DNA of 64,000 nt, from assembly GCA_946965045.2 (NCBI GenBank), contig OX337234.1:2232001-2296000 (forward strand), read 5' to 3'. How positions within the stretch are numbered: position 1 is the first letter of the stretch; the number at the start of each line of letters is the position of its first letter. The notes under the pieces are model-generated. The model had not been told where the DNA came from. It was given only the letters and a program-made list of their open reading frames with translations, and searched no databases. Positions 1-17,955 of the stretch are shown piece by piece. Source of the DNA: Epithemia pelagica. Taxonomy: Eukaryota > Protista > Bacillariophyta. The translations under genes were made by a program, and so were the position numbers.

Positions 1-714
1 ATTGTGGTATGCTTGATTCCACAGGAACACCAGTTATACAAGACTTTAAATGTGGCGTCTCGGTTATACACATCATCCAAAAGTTTCTCTAAAGGAGGAA
101 ATTGTCGACAAAAGACTGGTGACAATGGTGTTATGAGCGCTTATGGACAAATGTTACATCGTTTTAAGAGATGCATCAACAGCATTTCCTTCCATGACAG
201 CGATGGTCTTTTGATTGAGAGAGTTCGAGAAACGTGTCATTTGGCAGCGGAATTCATATCAAATAATTTTCCTGGAACACTTTCCTTGTTGAAAAGTTTA
301 CGGACCATTGGAGGGCTCCAAATCCCAGACGACTTGGGTGGTGACGCCAACGGTTGCAGCAGTAACATTGCCATCAGTGTCGATCTTATGAACTCTTCAC
401 ACATTGACATCAACGATGCTAGTGTTGGAGTTGTTCTATTTTCAGAGACAGAGCTTGGATCTGCACGCAATTGGTACTTTGTCATGCCCAATGTTTTGAT
501 AAAAATTGACTCGACAACTTACTCAGGTTTGGTAATTCGACTCTCCCACGGAGTTTCTATACTATTTGATGGACGTGTTATCCGTCATTGCACAAGTGTT
601 CATAAATGTGTCCGTTCCGCAGAGTCCCTTACGAGTGCCAAACGGGGACCCCACACTGTTGGCTGCTTTTTTGGGCTGTCCCTACCTGCCTTGACTCAAA
701 CCCCTGGAAGTTGA
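1..714 (+). CDS. TET/JBP-like Fe(II)-dependent dioxygenase (double-stranded beta-helix), 5' truncated
   Basis: Frame is open from the window start. Motifs: GVMSAYG (G-x-M-x3-G), N-S-S-H-I-D (HxD, 400-408), WYFVMPNV, LSHGVSILFDGRVIRHCTS (distal His at 586-588 followed by C-T-S). Spacing is typical of the TET/JBP clade. Confidence 0.72.
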   Translation: MVVCLIPQEHQLYKTLNVASRLYTSSKSFSKGGNCRQKTGDNGVMSAYGQMLHRFKRCINSISFHDSDGLLIERVRETCHLAAEFISNNFPGTLSLLKSLRTIGGLQIPDDLGGDANGCSSNIAISVDLMNSSHIDINDASVGVVLFSETELGSARNWYFVMPNVLIKIDSTTYSGLVIRLSHGVSILFDGRVIRHCTSVHKCVRSAESLTSAKRGPHTVGCFFGLSLPALTQTPGS

Positions 715-1341
715 TGGAAATTCCGATTCATACACCTGTTTTCACTACATTTGCAGCTTGCGTCACAAGCCTGATTTTTCTTCCTGCACCCACAGTTGTT
801 TGTCGTACATTGAGAACTGCTTGCTTTACAAGAACATCCAGTGCCATAACTCTTAGTAGTACGTAATTTCGTTTTCAACTGTCCTTCCTGACTATATGCG
901 ATTCGATGAGCGTCACGGATCGACAAAAAAGCCATTTTAGTGGGATCAAATGTTTTGTCAATAATCTGTTTCTGTAAATCTCGACGTGCTTTGCCCATTG
1001 GTGAAGAAGAATGAATAAGACTATACGTGTCCCGTGCGTACCATGTTGGTGTTCTTGTTCGTTTATCTCCTATAATCCCTTCAGGCAGTACCAATCTAAC
1101 AGATGGTTGCAAACTGTGAGAGACCGCAAAAACAAGGCAGTGTATTCCATGGCGGCTCTGGTTTGCACGATCTCGAGGGTCAGGAAACAGGGCTACAGCG
1201 TCTCCAACGGAAACTCGGAATCCAGCTTGCTGGTTCATCCTTATCATTTTGGTCGCTTGTCTTCGTTGTTCCGCCTGGCGAGTGGATATATTTTCATATC
1301 GAGTATATTGCCTTTCTGTCGTATCGTCTATCATAAGAAAA
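696..1341 (-). CDS. Transposase polyprotein C-terminal exon: KRBA2-like 'VGDxV' tail plus tesmin/TSO1-like CXC cysteine cluster
   Basis: QATKM...FRVSVGDAVALFPDPRDR resembles the post-integrase tail of KRBA2/Ginger2-type proteins. GCSCKASSSQCTTNNCGCRKKNQACDASCKCSENRCMN fits C-x-C-x5-C-x4-C-x-C-x6-C-x3-C-x-C-x4-C-x-N. Predicted intron 1342-1409 (GTAAGT...TTGTAG, 68 nt) joins it in frame to ORF 1406-1600. Confidence 0.7.
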
Positions 1342-1409
1342 CTACAATTACATCCACGTACATCTGAGTATTACTATAGAGCAAATGGAATGGAAGGAGA
1401 ACAACTTAC

Positions 1410-3378
1410 TTCTTGGATTGGTTTCTTTGCGAGCGACGTGTTGTTTCTTCAGTTTTTTCTGTGTCCATGAAACCAGATAGATAATTCAAATATTGCTCTT
1501 TCAACGACGTCTGACCGACCGATGTATATTCCTCATGGAACTTCTGCCGTAATGCAGAATTGAGATTTTCTTGAATATGTTTCCGACCGTGGATCGCCAA
1601 GTATCTTCGGAACGTGTTGATGGATGTAGATCTTTCCTTTTCGATGGATTTTTCAATACAGGCCTCATTAAATACATAATACTCAAAGAAGCAAGGACTC
1701 CACAGGAGTTCGAATCCTTTTGGATACCCATCATTCTTGTATCATATGCAATCGTCCAAAAGGCAGACGATGAGTGGCTGTCATCTGTCTGCAAGCAATG
1801 GACTGGACGCACATTACTGTCTGCTTGCTGTAGGAGTTCGTAATACCATAAAGTCGCCAGAGCACTCTTGTTCCACAGTGAATGATTGTTTCCCCCCGAC
1901 ATTCCATCATAGACATCAATTTTTTTCTTGTCGATATCGATGTGGATTACAACATAATGGCTTTTGCCGAAACCAAGAGAAATAACCTCTTTAACGTAGG
2001 GATCTTGATCTTTCAAATTATATGTCTTCATCTTCCATTTTCTCATTTCTGAAAGATCTGCTTTCGAATAGTTTGTTGTTGAATTATGGAACAGTATGGT
2101 CCTGTTGTGAAAGTAGTGCTCTACCAATGTGCCGAAGCTGTGTACCAACGAATGCGGTAGCCACTTTTGAGAACAATCTGAAAAGTAATGCTGGAGACAT
2201 TGACCCGATGGGACTTGAAGTACTTTGGTCGATTGACCACAAGAACAATCTTTGCAAGAAAGGTGACAAACAATGAATTTGTCTTTCCTATTTGCACCGA
2301 CGAAACTACCTGATGCAATAATTTGTTGGTACGCATTGGCCAGTGGAATTGTCTTCAGATGCCGTCGATCAGAAGGCTGTGGTGAAGGCATGATAACAAT
2401 CTCTTCTCCAGACACCACTTTGTTATGATCTTGAGACGACTTGCCCAACACTTCGGTCAATTTGTCCGACTTAGGAGGCGATGTGTTGGACTCACGAGGC
2501 AATTTGTCCGACTCTTGAGGCAATACGTTGGACACTTGGTGCAGTTTGTCCGACATCTGGGGCAATTTGTCGATCATTTTGGGTGTTTTGTCTGATTCTT
2601 GAAGCAATTTGTCAGAAACTTGGGGCGATTTGTCCGAACCAAGTGGTAACTTATCAGACATTCGGGCCGATTTGTCTGTTTCTTGAGGCCATTTGTCAGA
2701 CATTTGGGGCGATTTGTCTGTTTTTTGAGGCGATATGCCGGACACTTGGGGTGATATGTCGGACTTCTGAGGCAATACGTTGGACGCCTGGGTCGATTTG
2801 TCTGACGCTCTAGGCAATAAGTTGGACTCATGAGACAATCCGTGAGATTCTAAAGGCGATTCGTCGGACACTTGGGGCGATTTGTCTGTTTCTTGAGGCA
2901 ATATGTCGGACACTTGGGGCAATTTGTCTGTTTCTTGAGGCAATATGTCGGACACTTGGGACGATTTGTCTGTTTCTTGAGGCAATACGTCGGACACTTG
3001 GGGCGATATGTCAGACGCTTGTGGTAATTTGTCCAACACTTGAGACAAGACGTTGGATCCTTGGGGTGATTTGTGTGACCGTTGAGGTGATACATTGGAA
3101 TCGTGAGCCAATCGGTGAGACAAATGGGGCGATTTGTCAGACTTCTGAGGTAATATGTCGTGCTTATGAGGCAATTTGTCAGACAAATGGGGCAATTTGT
3201 CCGATTTCCGAGGGAATGCCTGCAACACTTGGGATGATTTGTCCGACTTGTAAAGTGGTTTGTCTTCATTGTCCTCATTATACGTGTCTTCATCATCACT
3301 ATCAGTTGATGAACTCATGACAGGCATGGAAGTGGCCACTTTTTGACGTGCCCTATCCCGGAGTTGGGAAATAAGCAA
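1410..3378 (-). CDS. Transposase polyprotein middle part: 7-aa repeat array plus Ulp1/C48 (SUMO-type) cysteine protease
   Basis: Catalytic motifs in order: GKSHYVVIHID (His, 1957-1959), IDVYDG (Asp), IQKDSNSCGVL (Gln/Cys, Cys at 1702-1704). A -1 frame switch between about 1670 and 1600 leads into INTFRRYLAIHGRK. Confidence 0.8.
2430..3255 (-). repeat. 21-bp (partly 42-bp dimeric) coding minisatellite encoding SDKLPQV/TDKSPQV/SDILPQE heptads
   Basis: Direct degenerate repeats, e.g. three consecutive 42-bp units gtcggacacttggggcgatttgtctgtttcttgaggcaatat at about 2863-2990. Confidence 0.95.
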
Positions 3379-5455
3379 TTTCCAAGTTTATGAGAGCTGG
3401 AGGCTCCAGAAGTGTCGGACTCAGCAGTATCTTCACCAGTCGATTCACATGGGAGACACGTTAGTTGGCCAGAAGACATGATATGTGGCCGAAATTTGTC
3501 TGGTATGTTGGACCAATCAGAATTTTGGAAGGTTTTGAAAACCTCATCTTCTGGTGTCATGTCGATATCAGTAGAGTTTTGTTGAATGAGGGAACGGACC
3601 CTTTCTGTTGCCAGGTCTCCCAGTTCCTCAATATCATTTACCGTTAATTCACCAACCTTGGCATAATGTTCCGCAATTTCAATCGAGCCAGTGTTGAGAC
3701 ACCGCTCAAGAGGTGTTTCCCAATCTCTTAATTCGGATGAAGAGTATCCTGTCGCTCCTTGAAAGTGATTGAAAAAGGGGACTCCAAATACAGTTTGATA
3801 AGCTGACATGGGCGTGGTACCAGTGCGACGAATTGACCCATTCAGAGCAGTCATTGCCCGTCCTAGTGCCATTGTCCAGTTGAAATTTCGGTTGCCCTTG
3901 GACCATTCCTCCGCAACATAAGACTGAACGATATTGCGGATGCTCTTGTTGGCGTTTTCGACAGAACCTTGATCCCGGGGCTTTCTCGGACGGCCTTGCA
4001 CGGTAGTAATATGCGGGTTATTGGCCATGAGCATTTTGATTATTTCTTTCCCACAAACTTCCATTCCATTATCTGTTTGGTAAATGGATGGAAAACCAAC
4101 GATGCCAAACATCAGAGATAAATGGTGAGAAATAATGGCTGTATGTTTCGAAGGGACCGCCGCCAACAATACAAATTGAGTGAAGTGATCTTTACAACTC
4201 AAGATGTATCTCATCTCTACTACATGGAGGTCCTTATCGCCTGCACCATTTGCATCGGACATTTTAACCAAGTCGACTTGATACCGATCTCTAAAAGCCA
4301 GAGAACGGATTGGTTTTATGGCACCTTTATGAGGAGCTGCCCGTTTTTTCCTCATGGAACAACGTGGACATCCCATGATGTACGCCTTCACCTGACGACT
4401 GGTGATGTTTGAATATGTTTCTTTCAAAGCATTATACGTTGTTTCCTCGCAAAGCCAATGTCCGACGCTGACATGGTGCTCGCGAATGACGTCGAAAATT
4501 TCATCCGCCGAAAGAATCCGTTGCCCATTGTCATCAAATAAAACATAGTGTGTCTGTCCATTACGACGTACTTTCCGAACTTGACGGTGACGAAATTTCT
4601 TGTTACGCCCATGGGGGTGGAGCAACCTAAAGCCGAGGCCAGTCTGTGGATCAGGTTGACCAGGTAGAGGTGCTTTTGCGTGAGAGTCCCCATCCTTCCA
4701 ATGCCGCAAGACATAGATTTCTTGTTCGAGTTGCTGGCGGGACAACACGCGCGAATTTTTTGCGAAATCACGGATAGGCTTGGTGTAATCTCCCGAAGAA
4801 GTGTCAATGGTAAAAGAAGTGCCAAAGACATGCTCATTGAACAGCATGCGATGTTCGTTCACAAGACTTGAGTCGTTGTCCTCAGGAAAATTAGATGGGA
4901 GAATCGTCACCGACTTTTGCATGGAGGAAGACGAATTTCCTTTCTTGTTGCATGAGGCCGTCGGTTTCTTGGTGGAAGATTTAGAACCAACGGACCTTTT
5001 AGCTTTCCGTGAGTCTTTTTTCTCCTTGTAGCCAACCTCCTCCGATGAGGAAGAAGAGTTATCGGCACTGTCGCTTGTAGAATCTTCCGATGACGACCCA
5101 GAATAAGTAATTCTGGAAGCGGATCGAGCGGTACGACGCCGGTCCTTTTTGGGTTCACGAACAGAAACATTTGAAACAGACGATGCCCGTCGTTTTGAAT
5201 TCGTCTTGTTTCTTTGTCTAGGGGCAGACGACAGAGAAGTGGAACTGGTACTATCGTCATCGTTGTCATGTCTTGCTTTCGACGTACGAGCTTTTTTGTT
5301 CGATTCGGACGGTGTTTTTTCCTCTTTTTCCCCCGCCCATAATCAACAGATTGCTCTTGTTGTTCTCGCAACTGTTTCAGAAACGGCTGCAACAGAGCAA
5401 GGTCTGTAGGGTCTATTTCAACCAGTTCCGTCTGTTTCCTTTTTTTCCTTGGCAT
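3315..5455 (-). CDS. Transposase polyprotein N-terminal part: basic/Ser-rich leader plus HHCC zinc finger and DDE integrase core (Ginger2/KRBA2/SCAND3-like)
   Basis: EHHVSVGH...GCPRC; RYQVDL (D at 4272-4274); IYQTDNG (D at 4071-4073); QGRPRKPRDQGSVENANK (E at 3957-3959). The integrase frame stays open upstream to about 5342. ATG 5455 (MPRKKRKQ, NLS-like) is in the adjacent frame, so a -1 switch near 5330 is needed. Confidence 0.88.
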
Positions 5456-5458
5456 GAG

Positions 5459-5668
5459 GAACGTAATTCTGCGGCAGAGCTACCACACTGTCGTCTCCCA
5501 CCAACAGAATTACGTATCAACTTGAAAGGAAACGAATTCCACCAACAGGAAAGTAGAAACAGAACGTAATTCAATGGCAGAGCTACCACACTGTCGTATC
5601 CTACCAAAAGAATGACGTGTCAACTTCTTGAAAGGAAAGGAATTCCAACAACAGGATAGTAGAAACAG
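5459..5668. repeat. Imperfect tandem duplication, period about 103 bp, immediately upstream of the transposase ATG
   Basis: gaacgtaatt...gcagagctaccacactgtcgt...gaattcca.caacagga.agtagaaacag starts at both 5459 and 5562. Confidence 0.9.
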
Positions 5669-6301
5669 ACAAAGTTGACAGATGCAAACGGCATGATAAA
5701 TGAGAAATAGGACAGAAAAGGAGAAAAGGGAAGGAATATACTCATACCTTAGCAATCTCAGAAGATAGAGCAAGAAGAATGGGAAGTATAGGTACGGAGT
5801 GCTTTCAGCAAGGAAAAGAGAGAGAGTGTTGTTTTGGTTGTAACAGTAATCAGGAGAGGTGTGTGTTGGGAAAAATGAAGCCTGCCATGGTGTGACGGTG
5901 TGACAGCGCTGTCAATCACGATATGTAAACATATTATCCTCATATATAGTGGATATTGAAAGGACTACACAAGAAATGAGAGTCGTTGGCCATATTTCAT
6001 TCATTCATAGATGGATATGGTTACGTAGAGAAGTATGGGCATTAATTTAGAAACTGTACAGATAATCACTGTTGTAATCTGGGACCAATAAATTCATATC
6101 GGGGTGAAATAAGGAAATCTTTATCGGAAGAATGAAGATTCGTACAATGAAGAATCGGTTTATATGAGAATTCCCAGCTTGGTTTTACGTTTGAAATAAG
6201 TATTAAATGAAAATATAGACAAAAATATGGTCTTAATGAAGGCATGTCGGGCTTACACGTGTAATAGTCAATTTGTAGTATGCATTTTGACTCATGAAAA
6301 C

Positions 6302-6808
6302 TCATTTGTAATTTGTAGAAGACAAATGGGGCGTAAAATGGCCAATTTTGACAAGATGTGCGATGTGTCTGACACAAATCCGACATATTGACCTACGCCA
6401 TTCGACAAATCGACTAATGGGACATAATCGCAGAAGGGTCGCAAATATGCCTTTGGGGGACAAAAATGAGAGACGGGGGACGATTTCTGAACGATGGTGT
6501 CAAATTTTGCATGGAGAGTTTTCAATGGAAAAGTCATGAATTGGTGCGGTCCTACCATTGCCATTGTCGATATGACTATTAGTACGATGTATCTGCAGAA
6601 GGCCGTCATCAACGGCATCATGAAGAGGCGTATGAGGACGATACCTGAGACGGACACATAAATTTTTTTTTCGAAAACAAAACGATAGGAAATGATAACT
6701 CGTTAGGAAGTTCAACGCTAGGAACGAACGATGGGGTGTGAAATCGGACAAATTACAAATGAAAATGCGACTCGTCCATTTGTGGAATGCGCAATTTGTT
6801 GGGTAACA
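6302..6808. repeat. Subterminal motif array (GACAAAT/GACATAT/ACAAAT) with a 15-bp inverted repeat
   Basis: tcatttgtaatttgt (6302-6316) is the reverse complement of acaaattacaaatga (6748-6762). GACAAAT occurs at 6321, 6404 and 6747, and GACATAT at 6382. Confidence 0.75.
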
Positions 6809-6918
6809 TCTCTAAAAGAGTAAGAGAGGTGGTGCTTTCACTGACCACAAAGATCGTTGGATCACGAACATGACGTCATAGACATCATTTCATCGAAACC
6901 TCACGTTTTTTCCAGACG

Positions 6919-8112
6919 ATGGACGACCACGACGACGATGATGATGCCAACGAACAAGAAGGACGTATCGCACGTCATTTGTTTCGAACTGACTCGGATA
7001 GTAGCATCAGCAGCAACCGGAGCACTGAGAGAGACCGAGACGACATCACTCTGCTAAATGGTCGCGAACGCAACAATACAGAGCCCACCAAAGAGAAAGG
7101 AGGAGGAGAAGAGGAAGAACGATCTCGGCGAACGATTCGTGGAATTGTACTCGAAGAAGCCTCTGTAGGTGGATCGATTGCGGAAAAGTTGTGGCCGGCG
7201 GCTGAACAATTGGCCGATTACCTCTTGCATCTTGCTGCTCTTCAGCCAGAGCAACTACGACTACAACAGGAGCATCATCAACAACAACAAGAGAATGCGC
7301 GAGGGAAAAGACCCTTCTCTCAAGAGTCATGGAATATAAAGTTCAAATTGAGGAATCAATTGACGCGACCATGTGCTTTTTTGGAATTGGGAGCAGGTGT
7401 GGGTTTGACGGGCTTGTTACTGGCGGCGAACTTATCGACTTGTCGACGAGCACTCTTGACCGATGTGGCACAAGGATTAGTTCTACTGGAACGGAACCGA
7501 CAAGCCAACTTTCCACCAGAAGCGTGTAATGACCAAAACAACAACAACAACAACAACACCAGAAGCACAGATAATTGTGATGTCAATGGGTTGGCCCCGA
7601 CTGTAACAAACTTTGAGGATGCTGTAGGTGCAGTCGGTCAAAGGCTCCCACCGACGGTACAGTTACAAGAACTGCGTTGGGGAAATGCGTCACATTATGC
7701 TCAAGCTCTAGACTGGTACTATCAGCAACATTGCAAACGAAGCAACCAAACAACAACACCCAACCACCACGGTGTTATAAATGAGAACAAACAAGAAGAA
7801 GAGCCTTTGATTTTGGTTGGAAGTGATGTGGTTTATTGGGAAGAACTGCATGAACCCTTGGAGCATTGCTTGTTTCATCTATTGAAGGGGACACCTGTAG
7901 GGACCTTTTGTATATTGGCTGGAATGCGACGATGGAAACGCGACTCCAAATTCTTTCAAACATTGGGCAAACGAACTCAAACCACCACACATGAATTGTC
8001 ATGTACATGCCTGGATGAATTTGTGGAGCGACGTGACGACGATAGGAACAATGACAGTGCACCCCGCCGAAACATTTGTCGCATTTACGCCATTTCCATG
8101 ATCCGCAAGTAA
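6919..8112 (+). CDS. Class I SAM-dependent methyltransferase, family 16 (METTL21/EEF1A-KMT-like protein lysine methyltransferase)
   Basis: KLWPAAEQLADYL, FLELGAGVGLTG (motif I), LTDV, LRWG, GSDVVYWEELHEPL; contains poly-Q and poly-N inserts. Confidence 0.85.
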   Translation: MDDHDDDDDANEQEGRIARHLFRTDSDSSISSNRSTERDRDDITLLNGRERNNTEPTKEKGGGEEEERSRRTIRGIVLEEASVGGSIAEKLWPAAEQLADYLLHLAALQPEQLRLQQEHHQQQQENARGKRPFSQESWNIKFKLRNQLTRPCAFLELGAGVGLTGLLLAANLSTCRRALLTDVAQGLVLLERNRQANFPPEACNDQNNNNNNNTRSTDNCDVNGLAPTVTNFEDAVGAVGQRLPPTVQLQELRWGNASHYAQALDWYYQQHCKRSNQTTTPNHHGVINENKQEEEPLILVGSDVVYWEELHEPLEHCLFHLLKGTPVGTFCILAGMRRWKRDSKFFQTLGKRTQTTTHELSCTCLDEFVERRDDDRNNDSAPRRNICRIYAISMIRK

Positions 8113-8710
8113 TCAAACGAAGGGATCGCTTTCCTGAAAGGACAAAAAGTCGGCGATGGCAGTACATCATATCAATGGCTATTGTTTGGCGCATACTTTG
8201 ATCCATGATCTTGATTTTGTGTGGATGGCCGAGTCTTCACCATGTGAACTGATTTTCTTGTTAACACAAGTGAAGAACTTCAAAAAAGCGCCTCGAGAGG
8301 GAGCGTTGTTGGAGAAGTTGATAGATTTCGATTCCACGAGAAAAAATGTCTCACCGATGGACTCTACATCCCCCCAACAAAACTTCGATAGAGCATATAG
8401 TCTCGACGAATTACAATGGGTTGTATGATTAAATAATGGTTCCTCACCTCACTGGTTCCGAGTTGCGATGGCATCAATGATTCCTTCTTATACAACCAGC
8501 CAAGAATTAGGTATTCACCAAAAAGTGGCGTCGCCGATTCTGACAGTGACTGGTAGACTGACTTTCTGGCATCAAGGAAAACGCGAGGAATTGTCCACTT
8601 TAGTTCTGCAAGCCACGAAGCTGTGTCTCTGTAAATACAAGACAATGATCTATTAAGTGAAAGGTTTTAGCGAATGCACTACGCAAAATTCGTAAGGTAT
8701 CATCGAACAA

Positions 8711-11299
8711 CTATGTTTCTTTGACGTCCTCAATGGCTTGAGCAATCACATCCATTTCTTGTTTCGACATTTCCGAAGGAGCTTGTTGAGTCTTTTTAGG
8801 TGTCCCTGTCTTTTTCTTTGAGGCTCCTCCGTGGATTTCCTCCAGCATAGCTTTCCGACTTAAACGAATCTTCCCGTTCTCTTTGCCAACATACTTCACC
8901 GTAAGTTCCTCTACACCCATACTTCGAACAAATGCTTCGCAATTTCGCACACGTTCCCGGGCCATCTCCGAAACATGACAGAGGCCTTCCAGGCCAGGTG
9001 AGGATCCGTCTTCGGGACCCGGAAGGATCTCCACAAAAACACCAAACGGATGTACACCTGTGATCTTTCCGGTGTAGTTTTCGCCCTCCACTGGGTCTGG
9101 TCCAACGTACTTTGGCTTGTCTTTCCTGTCTCCTTTACCACCGCCATTGCCTGAAATGAGGGCCATCACAAAATTCTTGGCCTCCTCAAGTTTCTCCTCT
9201 TTCATGGACGAAACCTGTATCTTCCCATCATCGCTTACGTCCATGTTCACCAGTTCATGATCCTCGATGATAGCGCGAATCTGCTTTCCACCAGGACCAA
9301 TGACCTTTCCAATTGACTCGAATGGGATTTCAAATACCGTTATTTTGGGCACTGTGGATGGCAAGCTTTCCCGAGGTTTCTCCAATACACTCTCCATCTC
9401 GTCCAAAATGTGCAAACGACCCTCTCGTGCCTGAGCTAATGCCCGTTCCATAGTTTCCAGGGTGAGACCTTCGCATTTAATATCCAATTGAAAGGTCGTG
9501 ATTCCCTCACGATCTCCTGCTACTTTGAAATCCATGGTGCCAAGAGCGTCTTCCGTTCCCGAAATGTCAGACAAAATGACAGCGCTTTCGTCTGATACGC
9601 CTTCTTTATCGTCAAGAAGCATGCCCATCGCAATACCTGCAACCGTCCTTTTCACCGGAACACCAGCATCCATCATCGCAAGGGCGCCGCCACAGACACT
9701 CGCCATCGAACTAGACCCATGGGACTCAGTAATCAGCGACTCGACGCGAATGGAGTATGGGAACTCATCCTCGCTAGGTATGACAGGAATCAGAGCTCTT
9801 TCTGCAAGATTTCCGTGCCCGACCTCACGTCGGCCTGGAGCACCGACTCTACCAGTCTCACCAACACTGCTGGGAGGGAATGTGTACTGCAAATAAAAGC
9901 GTTTCTCTTCAGTGCCATCAATTTTATCAATCTTCTGACGCATGCTGGAATCACCCAATGTTGCAGTTGCAACTGCTTGAGTCTCTCCTCTCGTAAAGAG
10001 TGCACTTCCATGCACACGAGGAAGGAAACCGGCCTCGATATCTATTCTTCGAATATCCTTCAATCCTCTACCATCACCGCGCAAACCAGAGTCCCGAGCT
10101 CTGGCATACAGTCTTTCACAAAGCAAATTCTTGAAGGCTCCCTTCACGGCAATTCCTTCATCAGGAAACTCTTCTTGAAAGGCCTCCGTAACCTCCTTTT
10201 TTAGTGCAGACATAATTTCTGACTGTTCTTTCTTTCTACCACCTGTTGCAAACATCTCGTCCACTTTCTGCCGGAAAGACTCGTTCACTTTATCTTGGAG
10301 CCCTTCAGGCATCATTTTAATGGTCGAATAATTCTTGACGACACCAACGGCCTCTCCGAGAGCCGAGATGCCTTTACAGAGACTTTGAATTGCTTCATGG
10401 CCAAATTTAACAGCTGCAATCATTTGAGCTTCTGGCAAAAAATCGGCGTAGCCTTCAATCATGAGCACAGCATCAGCAGTTCCGGCCACAGTAAGGTGAA
10501 GCTGTGATTCATCCATCTCAACGTGGGATGGATTCAAAATGAAATTCGATCCGTCCGAGCTTAATCCAACTTGGACGGCCGCTACTGGCTTATCGAGAGG
10601 AATATCAGAAAGATAGATAGCAGTTGCAGATGCCAGGATTGCCAACGGATCGCAGGATCGGACACCATCGTACGAAAGCACCCACGATAAAACTTGAGTT
10701 TCATGTCTCCATCCATCTGCAATCAATGGTCGGATGGGTCGGTCAATTAACCGGCAAACAAGAATTTCATGTTCGGCCGGGCGGCCATCTCTTCGTGTAT
10801 AACTGCCACTCGTTAATCCTGCACTGGAAAAACGTTCTTGATGTTCCACTGACAGGGGTAAAAAGTCAATTTCCTCCTTGGGTTTGGAATCTCTGGAGGC
10901 AGTGGCATAGAGGACGGATTCCCCTCTCGTCAATGTTACTGCACCCGCAGCTTGTCGCCCAATTTTGCCCGTTTCAATCACAATTTCTGGAACATCGTCC
11001 GCTTGCCCTGGAAGCGAAGGGAATTTCAATCTGTGTACCGTCGCTCCCGCTGGCCCTGTTTCCGACGATTCCAAGACAAATGGCGCAGATTGGTCCTTCT
11101 CCACAGCCTCCGTGACTCCATTAACGGCTTCCCAAACCTGACTGTTGATTGCTCGCCTTCGATAGACGGAGTTGAGAGGCAAGAAGGAACAGGATAGGTA
11201 CGCTGTTTGAAGCAGCAGGAGGATCGGAAGACTTCGACCACATGGTATTCTCATGGTGCCTTTTGTGTGGTGTGTTGATTGTGCGAGCGACTTTCCCAC
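8711..11299 (-). CDS. pnp: Polyribonucleotide nucleotidyltransferase (PNPase), probably plastid-targeted
   Basis: Two RNase PH domains (RLIDRPIRPL, RRE(V)GHGNLAERAL, SSSMASVCGG, DFKVAG), then KH (IGKVIGPGGKQIR) and S1 (FGVFVEI...GLCHVSE). The N-terminus has a hydrophobic signal followed by SCS|FLP. The true start may be the second Met. Confidence 0.96.
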   Translation of the reverse strand: MGKSLAQSTHHTKGTMRIPCGRSLPILLLLQTAYLSCSFLPLNSVYRRRAINSQVWEAVNGVTEAVEKDQSAPFVLESSETGPAGATVHRLKFPSLPGQADDVPEIVIETGKIGRQAAGAVTLTRGESVLYATASRDSKPKEEIDFLPLSVEHQERFSSAGLTSGSYTRRDGRPAEHEILVCRLIDRPIRPLIADGWRHETQVLSWVLSYDGVRSCDPLAILASATAIYLSDIPLDKPVAAVQVGLSSDGSNFILNPSHVEMDESQLHLTVAGTADAVLMIEGYADFLPEAQMIAAVKFGHEAIQSLCKGISALGEAVGVVKNYSTIKMMPEGLQDKVNESFRQKVDEMFATGGRKKEQSEIMSALKKEVTEAFQEEFPDEGIAVKGAFKNLLCERLYARARDSGLRGDGRGLKDIRRIDIEAGFLPRVHGSALFTRGETQAVATATLGDSSMRQKIDKIDGTEEKRFYLQYTFPPSSVGETGRVGAPGRREVGHGNLAERALIPVIPSEDEFPYSIRVESLITESHGSSSMASVCGGALAMMDAGVPVKRTVAGIAMGMLLDDKEGVSDESAVILSDISGTEDALGTMDFKVAGDREGITTFQLDIKCEGLTLETMERALAQAREGRLHILDEMESVLEKPRESLPSTVPKITVFEIPFESIGKVIGPGGKQIRAIIEDHELVNMDVSDDGKIQVSSMKEEKLEEAKNFVMALISGNGGGKGDRKDKPKYVGPDPVEGENYTGKITGVHPFGVFVEILPGPEDGSSPGLEGLCHVSEMARERVRNCEAFVRSMGVEELTVKYVGKENGKIRLSRKAMLEEIHGGASKKKTGTPKKTQQAPSEMSKQEMDVIAQAIEDVKET

Positions 11300-11776
11300 A
11301 ATGGACGTCGGGCAACAAAACTCCCTTAGCTGACCGACTCCCCAAACTGAAAGACAAGGCAGGGGTGGACAAGTTCGCTTGTATCGGCCGTCGCGACCCG
11401 AATGATGTGTTCAATGTCACAGATACAGTGGTGGTTGTGGAGCGAGAAGTGGAAGTGGTAGTCTCGGTGGCAGAAAATCTTGAGTACGTCATATGTTATT
11501 CACGAATAGTTTGTGAACGGAATATGAGGCCGCTAAAACCGCAAGATCATAGGAGTACTCCTAGAGGATAGAGGAGTAGAAAGAAACGAGCAAGGATATC
11601 TGCCATGGACGAATTTCATATCTAATATATAATCGATGTCTTACTAGAATTTGCAACGCATGCATTGGTGAAATCATAGAGGGAGTTTTTCACATGTACT
11701 TGGAGATGCGAAACATTCATCTTTCACTGCCCAATTGAGTGTAGACGCCAAAATGCACCAGGGAATCATGTACTCT

Positions 11777-12727
11777 TTACGAGGACGAAAAGATGGGGAA
11801 CTTGTCGAGGCTGGAGGGGTACCACGCATACTCTGAGAGATCAGTGGGCCACTTGACTTCCTTGGGAGAGGCGAGTTTCACCTTGCCTGAACTGAGCTTT
11901 TCCTTGAGCGGAGCCGTGGCGCCATTTTTCAGACCATTCTTCGCAAACGTTGTGCGCAGATATTCAACCGTAAACATCATGTTGTGGGCTTCGAAGTTGC
12001 CTCTGGCAAAGATAGGTTCGAAAACCAGAAACTTCATGTCCGCCCGCTTACTCTTCATGGCACGTTCGCGAGTGGTCCCGAAACGTTTCGGGAGGGCGTC
12101 GCCGTCGATGTACACCATGATGTAGTTGGGTCCCTTCGGCCAGTGTCGATGACCATTACCAAAAGTTACAATGTCAACGTATTCTTGAGCTCGTTCTTCC
12201 CAAAGCTTCTTGTTGAAACCATTCAACCTCAGAAACTTGTTTCGGGCCCGACGAATGGACCTGGACAGAAAAATGGTTCCGTGCGAGTCTCCAGCCAAGT
12301 TGAGCTTCCTCTGCTTTGTGACGGCCTCGTAAATGAGAATGGATGCGTGATCAATGACAGGACTTCCCGAAATACCCACACGGTCCAATGCAGCGTCGAT
12401 CCAATCAATACGGGTATTCAAACACTTGTACATGGGATTTTCCTTGAGAAAACTAGCATTGTTCAAGTTGACCACACCAACGTTCAATCTCTCTGCGTAA
12501 CGACGGCTTCTCTTGCTTTAAAGCTTGGCCACTTGTCCAAGTCCAGAAATGAAAATGAAAAAGTCGCTGTCTTCGGCCGTGACACCCGACGGATAATATG
12601 CAGCGTTCTCAGAAAGGAATTTCAGCGGCTCATCCTTGTTCATAACTTCATAAAAATCAAAAATCTTCTCACTCTTGGGATTCTGGAACTGGCCATCGTT
12701 CTCCAGGTCTGGGAAAATCCTCTCCAT
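11777..12727 (-). pseudogene. Intronless alpha/beta-hydrolase (lipase-like) with one in-frame TAA
   Basis: ORFs 12518-12727 and 11777-12487 are the same frame, joined as ...GQVAKL*SKRSRRYAERLNVG.... Motifs: FIFISGLG (oxyanion strand), LAGDSHG (GxSxG), VDIVTFG, GDALP (acid), EAHNM (His). Confidence 0.7.
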
Positions 12728-13875
12728 GATGTTGGTTGGTATGGGGTGTTGTTCTTTGATTGAGGGAAACTTTTCTGAGATCCAACAGAAGATGAACTCT
12801 AAAGCATACCTACAAACGGAAACGGAGCGGCTTCTGGTCGTTCATTCGGACCACGATTGTGTTGATGTCCAACGGTCACGAAAAAATTAATTGTGCACCG
12901 TTCCAAACCCACTAAAGTTACAGGTTCCGAGTCCGAGGAAGGCTTGAATAAAAATCATTCCCGAGCCGGCAAGGGCCAATGTAAGGATAGGAATCACATA
13001 CACGCCGGTCAGCCTTGATGCCAGTCGAGTGCCCTTGCTGGTTACTCCAACTTACCCTCATAAATTCGAAAAAAGCTACCGTTTATGGGTTTTGGTATCA
13101 CTATTGGGGGCAGAAAGACGACTCATTCACACACAACCACTGAAACGTCGATACCCGACTTTTGAACTCAATGATTCCACTTCCTGGCCGGCCAAACGAC
13201 GATGAGAACCTTACGTTTAAGTGGGATTCGATTCTCCACTTCCCAGCACCGAAGCTCGTCCACATGTGGTTACGCTACTTTGAAATACCGTATTCATGCT
13301 AAATGCTTATAGTTCTCCAAAGGTAATGAAATCTTCCAATACATGCTTAGACAAAGTCTCATCAACCTAGTTTCGGCTGTATTCTTTTAGAACTACCGAA
13401 ACAGAGTTGACATAGACTACTCCGAGGAAGCAAATTGGACAAAGAAAAACGCATCTACGAAACGATTGTCCTTGAACAAAACACGGACCCGTCAACATCA
13501 ATCAATAACTTAATCTATGCAATATCAGCGAGAATCGCAACGGTCCCTTTCGTGACGACGGCTCATTGGGTTCCTTTCGTGAGGCAGTAGGTATCATCGG
13601 AGGAAAGCAGCTTACGAACAACAACAGTTGCGCTAAATTTAAGAGAAAGTTTTTATCTGCCGAGGCTTTTCCAGGCCAGATCATGGAGAAAACTATTTGT
13701 TGAAGGACAAACTCTGCTGCATTCCACACACTAGTTGATGGAGGACAAACTCAGTTGCACATCGTTCGTCAAAGGATGAACTTGGATCTTACTCGAACAT
13801 AGAAACTTTTTAGAGACCGATCGCATGGCACCCAATCGTTTTCTTGGGGAATCAATGATTTTCATAATAATGATT

Positions 13876-15498
13876 TCACAAGGAGATCAGTTTCTGTGAA
13901 AGCAATATGCGAAAGGATCGCTCACAATTAATTCCTGCTTCGTCCAAAATCAAGTCTGCTTCCAACAGACACGATCGAGCTTCTTCAAGCATTCTCCGGT
14001 CCCTGAATAGATCAGCAAGAACGGCCAAAGTTTTAGCTGCCTCCCATGCAAAGGAATCAGACCCCGAATTGATCAGCTTCTTCTGGACTTCTAGCACAGA
14101 GACATAGGCGGACATAGCTGAATCCATATCCATGCTGGCTACGTGAACAACTGCAATGTTCTGCAAAGTTGTTAACATGGCTTGGTTCTTTGAAGTTTTA
14201 TCTGCCGAAGATTCTCTCTTGATTGCAAGCGCCTCTTCGTGACAAGCAAGAGCGGCTCTGTAGTTTTTGCGGAGAAGGTAAACCTTTCCGATGGCATCAA
14301 GAGTCTTTGCAATCTCTGCGTGCTTCTCTCCCAAAACCAAGGACTGGATCTCGCAGGCCCGCTTCAAAGCGACAAATGCTTCATCGTATTCCCTCCTTAG
14401 AGTCTGCGCAAGTCCAATTTGATACTGAACAGTAGCAATCTTCAGGCTCCGGCTGGGGTCACCTTCCTCCAAGATAACATTGTATTCATGGACACGAAGC
14501 GCGTTTTTGAAGAACACGATACATTCATCAACTTTGCCAATCTTAAAAAATACGGTCCCCATATTTCCGTAAGATTCTGCCAAATGATCTCCTGGATCAC
14601 ATTTGACGGCTTCCTTGTAAGCAGCGATGGCTGCATCGTCATTTCCATCTTTGACATGCGTATTTCCTATCAAGTTCCACACAGTCGCAACACGAGAGTC
14701 TTTCGTACCGTACCTCTTCTGGGAATCTTCAAGTTCATCTAAGAGAAGCCCGAGTGACGAGAACTCTTGAGACAAGTCTATGGCCAAAGGTGACGAGAGT
14801 GTTCTTCTATGAAGCGACTTAGAGGGCTTTTGTGGTACTGTTTTCTTCGAGGACGGTCGACATTGGGTTGCATCCCAAGAATTTGCATGCTTTCGGAGTG
14901 GAGCAGCTGCTTTGGGTGACGAAACAGAACTGATGCTGGAAGTAGAAGATCTCTTTGGTGGTAGAGGAGGTAGTTCTCCAGGTGAAGACTGAAGTCGTGG
15001 GACGGCGGATGAGATTCTTCTATGACGCCTAATCGGCCGAGGCAGAGCGATCGTTTTCCTCTGTGATTCAAGTGGCGATGAAGCAGGAGAATTGGACGCA
15101 TTTTGGATGAAATCTTCGCTCTCACAGTAATCTTCAAACCATGTCTCTTCTGCCGTTCGAAGAGTAGTCGCGGTGGAGATTGTCCCATCGTCCGAAGTGG
15201 GCCGGGGACGTTCACCGACTCCCACGACTTTTGCCAGATCATGCGGTGGTGAGTCCAACTTGGACTCTGTGTGGGAACGTTCATCGAACTGGACAACGTC
15301 GATAGGTGGCACAGGCATATCGTTGAGACTAGCTTCCGACATTGTGCTGAAGATCGAGCTCTGAATTACGTAAGAAGCCTCTTCCTCTAGAGGTTGTTTC
15401 GGCAAACAAGCAACCTTCAAAGTGGTTCGGATCGTCGACTCAACAGATTTGTGAGAACGCGCACAGCTAAATAATGAGGGAGTGTGGGCGAATCCCAT
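13876..15498 (-). CDS. TPR-repeat protein (kinesin-light-chain-like TPR block) with Ser/Pro-rich N-terminus
   Basis: Tandem TPR helices: VATVWNLIGNTHV, LAESYGNMGTVFF, IATVQYQIGLAQ, IAKTLDAIGKVY. Confidence 0.85.
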   Translation of the reverse strand: MGFAHTPSLFSCARSHKSVESTIRTTLKVACLPKQPLEEEASYVIQSSIFSTMSEASLNDMPVPPIDVVQFDERSHTESKLDSPPHDLAKVVGVGERPRPTSDDGTISTATTLRTAEETWFEDYCESEDFIQNASNSPASSPLESQRKTIALPRPIRRHRRISSAVPRLQSSPGELPPLPPKRSSTSSISSVSSPKAAAPLRKHANSWDATQCRPSSKKTVPQKPSKSLHRRTLSSPLAIDLSQEFSSLGLLLDELEDSQKRYGTKDSRVATVWNLIGNTHVKDGNDDAAIAAYKEAVKCDPGDHLAESYGNMGTVFFKIGKVDECIVFFKNALRVHEYNVILEEGDPSRSLKIATVQYQIGLAQTLRREYDEAFVALKRACEIQSLVLGEKHAEIAKTLDAIGKVYLLRKNYRAALACHEEALAIKRESSADKTSKNQAMLTTLQNIAVVHVASMDMDSAMSAYVSVLEVQKKLINSGSDSFAWEAAKTLAVLADLFRDRRMLEEARSCLLEADLILDEAGINCERSFRILLSQKLISL

Positions 15499-15969
15499 CC
15501 GCGAATTGGACTGGGTACACGATCGACACTCCGTACTGAATCTACGAAGATCCTACGTTGCTTGCTGTCACGCAGTCTTACCATATCCCGGATTTCACCT
15601 TTCCAAACATTTTCAACGGCGAAAACTTGGATATTTCGGGGGCTCCGTTGGCATGTTCTTGGCACTTGGCACACGCAACTATATGTAATGAATTTGATTC
15701 AAGAACTACTTAGGAAGACAGTAGAGATACATACACGTAAACGGACTGACTGAAGACAGTCTTGTGACGCTTCCACTATTGTATAACAAGACCAAAAGTC
15801 TGTTGCAAGATCTAATATATATAATAATATTATGTCTTCCAAGACTTCAAGTTTTGAGTGCTTCATAAGCGACCGATGTGTTGATCTGTGGTCGCGCAAA
15901 TCGGCCGAAGCCGCAGGCACAGCAACAAACGAAGAAGACCATACAAGTTCTCCTTGAATCGGCGCCACC

Positions 15970-17272: not shown

Positions 17273-17955
17273 TCACATTTGAGCAAAGTTGTATTTGGAG
17301 GGGCTTGTCGGATTGGGAGGAAAGTAGTAACGTCCAAAGCCTTTCTTGATCGCTTTCCGCGACATTTCTGGTGTCAATTCACAACCAACGGCAGCAGTTG
17401 CATTGGTGAGCACGTTCAGTAGGAAAAACGCGAGAATGGGAGAAAAATCCAGTCCAAAGAGAGGCGGAATCACTCCTCGAAACAAATTGAGAAATGGATC
17501 CGTAATCGCAAAGATAGGCTGCAAGGCCGCGACTCCCTGCGCCTGAGGAAACCAACTCAACAAAATACGACCTGTAATAATCAAGTTATACTGTTGCAGT
17601 GCGTGAGCGAGAATGGGATAAATGAGACAAGTGGCAATGTTCACAGTCAAAGATGACACCAACGTACAATGCTTAGGAAATTGGCAAATCCACCGACAAA
17701 AACTTGTTCAGCAACACCATATCCCGGTATGGCCATTGCAGTCTTCCCTGAGGTGTGGCCCTGTTTTTGTCGAATGGCCCACCTAAGCTCGTGCCTTGCC
17801 ATCATCGATTGGTCTGGCGCTGATCTCGACAAAGCGGACGAACATACACGTCTTGCCGAGTCCAGAGACTGGGGAAGGAAGACGGAAGCGTGGACATTGG
17901 CCACGCAGAAAAACGCAATCACCAATGAATGAAAGAATGTTTTGACAGCCTTCAT
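17273..17955 (-). CDS. YGGT (YlmG/CCB3-family) plastid membrane protein
   Basis: Intron 17591-17667 (GTACGT...AACAG) gives FANFLSIYNLIITGRILLSWFP...ITDPFLNLFRGVIPPLFGLDFSPILA. N-terminal signal peptide MKAVKTFFHSLVIAFFCVANVHA. Confidence 0.9.

Follow-up and report, generated by a model that had tools for sequence, protein, structure and literature searches.

The first 6.8 kb of the analysed stretch of Epithemia pelagica DNA (the window; 64,000 nucleotides, contig OX337234.1, positions 2,232,001 to 2,296,000) raise two questions: does the oxygenase gene that is cut by the left edge belong to the integrase-bearing element beside it, and what kind of enzyme does it encode? A preliminary description had read this segment as a TGTTA-terminated Ginger-type transposon with an integrase, a SUMO-type protease and a CXC domain on the minus strand, and a TET/JBP-like dioxygenase on the plus strand. 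In our analysis, positions 1–6808 probably represent the larger part of a Ginger-type cut-and-paste DNA transposon, 8.2–8.3 kb in full length, which carries a TET/JBP-like oxygenase as cargo, convergent with its transposase gene. The element is a recently active cut-and-paste transposon of a diatom.

Element ends, copies and the position of the oxygenase

A protein search with the integrase returned nine relatives, all in ENA assemblies, and a search with the integrase alignment found no homologues beyond these nine. The contig of the closest relative, L001, was aligned with window positions 1–6808 (98% identity at the aligned positions). Homology ended exactly at 6808, where the minus strand begins with TGTTA, as the preliminary description had read it. 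L001 contains a full copy of 8223 bp (7303–15525), and a third copy of 8348 bp is present in L009 (6752–15099). The first 15 nt of the L001 element, TGTTACCCAACAAAT, match its other end perfectly as an inverted repeat, and the same was found in L009. The L001 and L009 elements have TGTTA at either terminus, a more diverged element in L002 has it at its 5' end, and so does the element end in the window. Target site duplications (TSDs) of 4 bp were detected on both sides of the insertions: GCAC in L001, GGTC in L009 and GATC in L002. The window, L001 and L009 insertions have unrelated flanks.

As expected from L001, the element runs on for approximately 1306 nt to the left of the window start. 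A contig of run X1 covers window positions 1–546 without a difference and reaches 1307 nt further left, as L001 predicts. The preliminary description had suggested looking leftward for the start of the oxygenase gene and a second terminal inverted repeat (TIR), and the other copies revealed both about 1.3 kb beyond the window. In L001 and L009, the oxygenase gene starts approximately 110 nt inside the other TIR. Its full open reading frame (ORF) of 636 amino acids (aa; 13506–15416 in L001 and 13080–14990 in L009) lies on the strand opposite the transposase. In the window, the open part of the gene (1–714) overlaps the last transposase ORF, the tail ORF, by 19 nt. The oxygenase is cargo inside the TIRs and TSDs, not a neighbouring gene. 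This was observed in the two full copies of the window family (family A) and in a sister family diverged by approximately 50%.

The sister family, B, spans positions 8930–16849 in L002, with a TGTTAC terminus and the TSD GATC. Its gene order is that of the window family: integrase, protease and tail on one strand, and the oxygenase convergent with them. Identities between these two families were 52% for the integrase, 30% for the protease, 48% for the tail and 47.5% for the oxygenase. Family C, found in L007, encodes an integrase and a protease, with the oxygenase (49% identity) convergent to them. Between families, the oxygenases are 47–49% identical and the integrases 49–56%. The association of the two genes is thus old within one clade, with the layout kept and both proteins diverged to a similar extent. 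Three environmental contigs (L004, L010 and L011), too short to reach the integrase core, encode an oxygenase with approximately 35% identity over nearly the full length. Directly downstream of it, each has a convergent tail ORF (26–34% identity, E 1e-16 to 1e-22). The proposed co-occurrence of oxygenase and integrase was thus found in families A, B and C, and that of oxygenase and tail ORF in the environmental contigs. For the more distant oxygenase relatives (those below approximately 32% identity, and those in L005 and L006), no integrase was found on the DNA at hand.

The relatives in L005 (10001–12862) and L006 (4535–6805) comprise 953 and 756 aa, respectively, with 31–36% identity and no integrase within 10 kb. 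The L005 relative adjoins a Copia-type reverse transcriptase (RT), and the neighbours of both relatives gave no Pfam matches. They may be host genes or cargo of other elements. A nested arrangement was seen in L002 (6269–17650), where the family B element has interrupted an older copy in inverted orientation, with an oxygenase ORF that remains open (P0010, 598 aa). A second TGTTACTCAAC terminus occurs there at 17647, preceded by the same 8 nt.

Fold and conserved residues of the oxygenase

The full-length oxygenase comprises 599–636 aa, including an N-terminal extension of approximately 330 aa. An exhaustive HMMER search yielded 572 representatives at E <= 1e-3 (50% clustering), and conservation was read from an alignment of 53 of these. 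The H197, D199 and H259 residues of the HxD...H triad were invariant in the 53 sequences, and also in 33 full-length relatives. R99, R255 and R258 were near-invariant in the 53-sequence alignment. R255 and R258 are the two Arg residues of a WDGRxIRH motif that precedes the distal His in this clade. At a mostly aromatic position, the window oxygenase has a Cys where L001 has a Trp (TVGCFF vs TVGWFF).

Confident AlphaFold2 models were obtained for the C-terminal 300 aa (predicted local distance difference test, pLDDT 87; predicted template modelling score, pTM 0.86) and for a 599-aa protein (pLDDT 82, pTM 0.86). A Foldseek search of the PDB returned TET2 first (E 4e-10), followed by CMD1, NgTet1 and CcTet, ahead of AlkBH3. 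In the AlphaFold DB, the matches were JBP2, JBP1, NgTet1 and TETs, and the clusters were named Tet-like or JBP1/TET oxygenase. VIA-align gave Z scores of 17.2 for TET2, 15.8 for NgTet1, 15.2 for CcTet and 15.0 for CMD1 with the domain model, as compared with approximately 13 (at most 13.2) for AlkBH3/FTO. With the full-length model, Z rose to 19.7 for TET2 and was at most 12.3 for AlkBH3/FTO; the overall range for CMD1, CcTet and NgTet1 was 14.6–16. The gap between TET2 and AlkB/FTO is wider in the full-length model because N-terminal parts also align to TET2, CcTet and CMD1. Sequence identity to the TET/JBP structural matches was 7–13%. The language-model neighbours of the oxygenase carry Tet_JBP.

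Since the best structural matches are TET/JBP enzymes, scoring above AlkB/FTO, the oxygenase is closest to the nucleic-acid-modifying TET/JBP enzymes. A best match to a 2-oxoglutarate (2OG) oxygenase family acting on other substrates, which would have spoken against the preliminary description, was not seen. The models place the cargo oxygenase in a divergent TET/JBP family, by fold and not by sequence model.

Transposase gene and superfamily placement

The gene opposite the oxygenase is a long transposase gene, consisting of a basic N-terminus, an integrase, a heptad-repeat linker, an Ulp1-like cysteine protease and, last, a tail that resembles KRBA2/SCAND3 and contains a CXC cluster. In the ORF listing of the window, it appears as four successive minus-strand ORFs (Table 1). 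A segment homologous to the first of these is fused in frame to the integrase in the relative P0006. For an intron between this ORF and the integrase ORF, many candidates were found, none of them convincing. In Pfam, the integrase ORF matched Integrase_H2C2 with E 6e-6, which passes the curated cut-off, and rve with E 6e-4; the same matches were obtained in L009. Against the PDB, retroviral integrases matched at E 1.5e-4, and the nearest Atlas clusters of the integrase core were KRBA2-like. Together with the readable H-x5-H...C-x2-C and D/D/E motifs, these Pfam matches bear out the HHCC/DDE integrase of the preliminary description. The L001 integrase has a 1-nt deletion of its own.

The C-terminal half of the integrase, the repeat linker and the protease form a single ORF of 937 aa in L001 and 795 aa in L009. 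In the window, the repeat array and the Peptidase_C48 match are contained in a separate ORF of 625 aa. The copy number of the repeat varies among copies, with two 42-nt indels relative to L001. The GACAAAT core of the coding repeat is seen again in the 5' non-coding region, at 6321 and 6404, and the enrichment of this word in the two regions is due only to the repeat itself. Peptidase_C48 scored 21.0 bits in the window (cut-off 20.7), 20.2 for L009 and 19.0 for family C. When the Ulp1 alignment was searched as a profile against PDB sequences, only chance matches came back. The His, Asp, Gln and Cys residues of the protease are invariant across families A, B and C at approximately 30% identity. 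With these residues and a marginal Pfam score, the proposed protease was confirmed as Ulp1-like. The CXC domain fared less well: the cysteine cluster is present and its spacing reads as CXC-like, but the Pfam TCR matches (E 0.12 in the window, 0.0075 in family B) are both below the 23.5-bit cut-off.

The protease stop codon lies inside a consensus 5' splice site, both in L009 (GAA/GTAAGT) and in the diverged L002 (AAG/GTGAGT). A putative 68-nt intron probably joins the tail to the protease ORF. Runs X1–X3 behave as genomic DNA, with contigs of up to 509 kb and without splice joints. At both deletion sites of the window copy (Table 1), the contigs of these runs have the longer form, and both frameshifting lesions are private to this copy. 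With its transposase gene interrupted in this way, the window copy would depend on transposase supplied in trans. Immediately upstream of the first transposase ORF, the 5' non-coding region contains a tandem duplication at 5459–5669, with a unit of approximately 103–106 bp and 87–93% identity.

The H2C2 and DDE motifs, TIRs, TGTNR terminus and 4-bp TSDs are defining Ginger features, and our placement is based on them. Ginger elements have an H2C2 + DDE integrase, TIRs of 40–270 bp and TGTNR termini; Ginger1 targets CCGG/CCGT, and Ginger2 targets AT-rich RTATAY (PMC2836005). Their TSDs are 4 bp long for Ginger1 and 4–5 bp for Ginger2 (PMC10045372). Within Ginger, the signals are mixed. The Ulp1 protease lies C-terminal to the integrase, as in many Ginger1 elements (PMC2836005). 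The nearest protein neighbours of the integrase are KRBA2-like, which points to Ginger2, since KRBA2 and SCAND3 derive from it (PMC3575427). On these comparisons, the integrase looks closer to the Ginger2/KRBA2 clade, with the Ulp1 fusion as a Ginger1 trait. Neither the GPY/F nor the YPYY motif of Ginger1 was seen on reading the ORFs by eye. Unlike in known Ginger elements, the protease and the repeat array are located between the integrase core and the tail, and a second, convergent cargo gene is present.

Three other classes were considered and rejected. Polintons make 6-bp TSDs and do not have H2C2 (PMC10045372). IS3EU/GingerRoot elements have 6-bp TSDs, TA..TA termini and no H2C2 (PMC10045372). 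For a long terminal repeat (LTR) retroelement, the element has neither LTRs nor an RT; Pfam scans found no RT domain in any of its ORFs.

Table 1. Features of the element in the window, with positions, strand and the basis of each assignment
Feature	Position	Strand	Basis or remark
Transposase-side 6.8 kb of the transposon	1..6808	-	alignment to L001
TET/JBP-like dioxygenase, C-terminal 237 aa	1..714	+	convergent with transposase gene; open from window edge
Oxygenase upstream Arg	106-108	+	motif reading
Oxygenase HxD	400-408	+	motif reading
Oxygenase distal His	586-588	+	motif reading
Tail ORF, 212 aa, integrase C-terminal (KRBA2/SCAND3-like) region	696..1334	-	Atlas neighbours are KRBA2/SCAND3-like integrase tails
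CXC cysteine cluster in tail ORF	732..836	-	sub-threshold Pfam TCR match
Putative 68-nt GT-AG intron (GTAAGT...TTGTAG)	1342..1409	-	would join protease ORF to tail ORF in frame
Protease ORF with repeat array	1501..3378	-	ORF listing
Private 22-nt deletion truncating protease ORF	1564..1569	-	comparison with L001 and contigs of runs X1-X3
Ulp1/C48-like protease domain	1645..2064	-	His within 1948-1965, Asp within 1897-1914, Gln and Cys within 1699-1725
21/42-nt coding repeat array, heptad SDKxPQx-type linker	2426..3250	-	between integrase and protease
Integrase ORF, 535 aa	3315..4922	-	Pfam Integrase_H2C2 and rve
Private 1-nt deletion splitting integrase and protease ORFs	3381..3385	-	ORF continuous in L001 and L009; contigs of runs X1-X3 with extra base
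DDE residues of integrase	within 4263-4283, 4059-4079, 3948-3968	-	D/D/E motif reading
H2C2 zinc finger	4359-4478	-	H-x5-H...C-x2-C readable
182-aa ORF, basic K/R-rich N-terminal region of transposase gene	4907..5455	-	frame differs from integrase ORF
5' non-coding region	5456..6793	-	with tandem duplication
Terminal inverted repeat TGTTACCCAACAAAT, TGTNR-type terminus	6794..6808	-	same 15 nt perfectly inverted at the two ends of L001 and of L009
Flanking TCTC, presumed one copy of 4-bp TSD	6809..6812	.	4-bp TSDs of other copies; left copy outside window

Two host genes follow the element. The first, at 6919–8112 on the plus strand, encodes a Methyltransf_16 domain (lysine methyltransferase, E 5e-17). 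Only 111 bp separate its ATG from the transposon end upstream, which puts the insertion in the likely promoter region. An 862-aa polynucleotide-phosphorylase-like gene on the minus strand (8711–11299) has two RNase_PH domains, RNase_PH_C, KH and an N-terminal extension.

Proposed function, rival explanations and known systems

Several results weigh against a Ginger transposon with TET/JBP cargo. The oxygenase gave no match to Pfam Tet_JBP (PF12851) or 2OG-FeII_Oxy_6, either as the window ORF, as the full protein, in nine relatives or in the 53 members of the alignment; the best single Pfam score, from one relative, was E 0.83. A PDB sequence search with the 53-sequence profile gave chance matches only. 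No conserved Arg or Lys is found on the last strand of the double-stranded beta-helix, at the place of TET2 R1896 and NgTet1 R289, and the co-substrate or the chemistry may differ. The Ulp1 Pfam scores are only at the threshold, and a search for RNA runs bearing on expression and on the intron returned only the DNA-like runs X1–X3. The family A copies are too alike for selection to be measured (8 differences in the 1911 nt of the oxygenase gene). The 15-bp TIR falls short of the range reported for Ginger, and the targets GCAC, GGTC and GATC (three TSDs) are not AT-rich and fit neither the Ginger1 nor the Ginger2 preference (PMC2836005). The profile test of the oxygenase ORF against Tet_JBP and other 2OG-Fe(II) models, suggested by the preliminary description, was therefore negative. 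The TET/JBP-like label stood on the fold, through TET2, CMD1, CcTet, NgTet1 and JBP, and did not stand on the sequence model.

In the mechanism that we propose, the dioxygenase would oxidise a methylpyrimidine in DNA, most likely 5-methylcytosine (5mC). Oxidation of 5mC would weaken the silencing that methylation imposes on the element. This role has also been proposed, likewise without experiment, for TET-bearing transposons of fungi (Kojima 2025, PMC12730594). The Ulp1 domain would deconjugate SUMO or a related modifier during transposition. Action of Ulp1 on SUMO-like conjugates in transposition has been discussed for Ginger1 and Mutator elements (PMC2836005). By analogy with these systems, the element may both counter silencing and remove SUMO.

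The alternative that survives best accepts the dioxygenase as real cargo, but has it make another, possibly hypermodified base, as CMD1 and JBP do, or serve transposition, with no erasure of methylation. We consider this unlikely, although several observations lend it some weight. In TET2 and NgTet1, the last-strand Arg (R1896 and R289, respectively) holds the C5 carboxylate of 2OG, and TET2 R1261 is a second binding Arg (PMC7854593). The terminal-strand Arg is missing here, and the near-invariant R255 and R258 are found beside the distal His instead. CMD1, which uses vitamin C (PMC7854593), is among the best structural matches, and Kojima leaves a non-erasure option open for the fungal cargo as well (PMC12730594). 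Against it, neither the ORF listing nor the Pfam scans revealed a glycosyltransferase or other partner gene in the element. A single lost Arg is not in itself proof that the co-substrate has changed, and R99, at the position of TET2 R1261, is conserved.

It is less probable still that the cargo is an AlkB/FTO-type or other non-TET 2OG/Fe(II) oxygenase, acting in alkylation repair or RNA demethylation. The missing Tet_JBP match and the missing canonical C-terminal Arg would fit such an enzyme, and AlkBH3 and FTO also match the oxygenase model (Z 11–13, Foldseek E 1e-6 to 1e-5). However, TET/JBP enzymes fill the top 16 places of both VIA lists, the full-length model widens the gap between TET2 and AlkB/FTO, and the AlphaFold DB matches are JBP1/2 and Tet-like clusters. 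It is very improbable that the oxygenase belongs to the host, or to another element, and merely adjoins the integrase element: the left TIR and all but the C-terminal 237 aa lie outside the window, and oxygenase relatives occur without a nearby integrase in L005 (same assembly) and L006 (metagenome), but three insertions with different flanks enclose or adjoin the gene, two of them complete and each with its own 4-bp TSDs, and the diverged families B and C keep its position and orientation.

Our preferred reading remains a Ginger-type transposon with a TET/JBP-like oxygenase as cargo. A bolder extension, to which we give only a slim chance, starts from the missing last-strand Arg. A stramenopile Ginger-type lineage would have long carried a TET-like clade of its own, in which the canonical 2OG-binding Arg was replaced. 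This clade may use another co-substrate or make an undescribed base modification on its own or host DNA, comparable to CMD1.

Transposons with their own methylation eraser would be direct evidence of an epigenetic arms race. The preliminary description had regarded TET cargo as mainly a trait of Kyakuja-Dileera-Zisupton elements. This view is outdated: Kojima 2025 lists 11 lineages of complete TET-bearing DNA transposons, which are without exception fungal and include no Ginger element, and mentions neither integrases nor diatoms (PMC12730594). All cases of TET cargo documented so far are from fungi and involve other transposase classes, and a full-text literature search found no relevant report of a transposon-linked JBP/TET dioxygenase in diatoms, stramenopiles or Ginger2. 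A TET-like cargo in an integrase-type diatom element suggests that TET/JBP genes have been captured repeatedly and independently among eukaryotes. The cargo also points to a compact, apparently active enzyme clade that escapes current domain models and has approximately 570 representatives at 50% clustering. The element offers a testable link between the methylation of transposable elements and oxidised bases in ecologically important algae.

With TET2, NgTet1, CcTet, CMD1 and JBP1/2, the oxygenase shares the double-stranded beta-helix, the HxD...H iron triad and the upstream conserved Arg. It differs from them in having no conserved last-strand Arg and in its long N-terminal extension. As in the fungal TET-bearing transposons (PMC12730594), TIRs and TSDs delimit the window family, and its second gene encodes an intact TET/JBP-type dioxygenase. 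In both, one genome holds several families and multiple copies, and a role against methylation silencing is proposed. In contrast to the fungal elements, its host is a diatom, and its oxygenase forms a separate, divergent clade that is invisible to Pfam and has no conserved terminal-strand Arg. None of the 11 fungal lineages has the retroviral-type integrase that the window family uses as its transposase.

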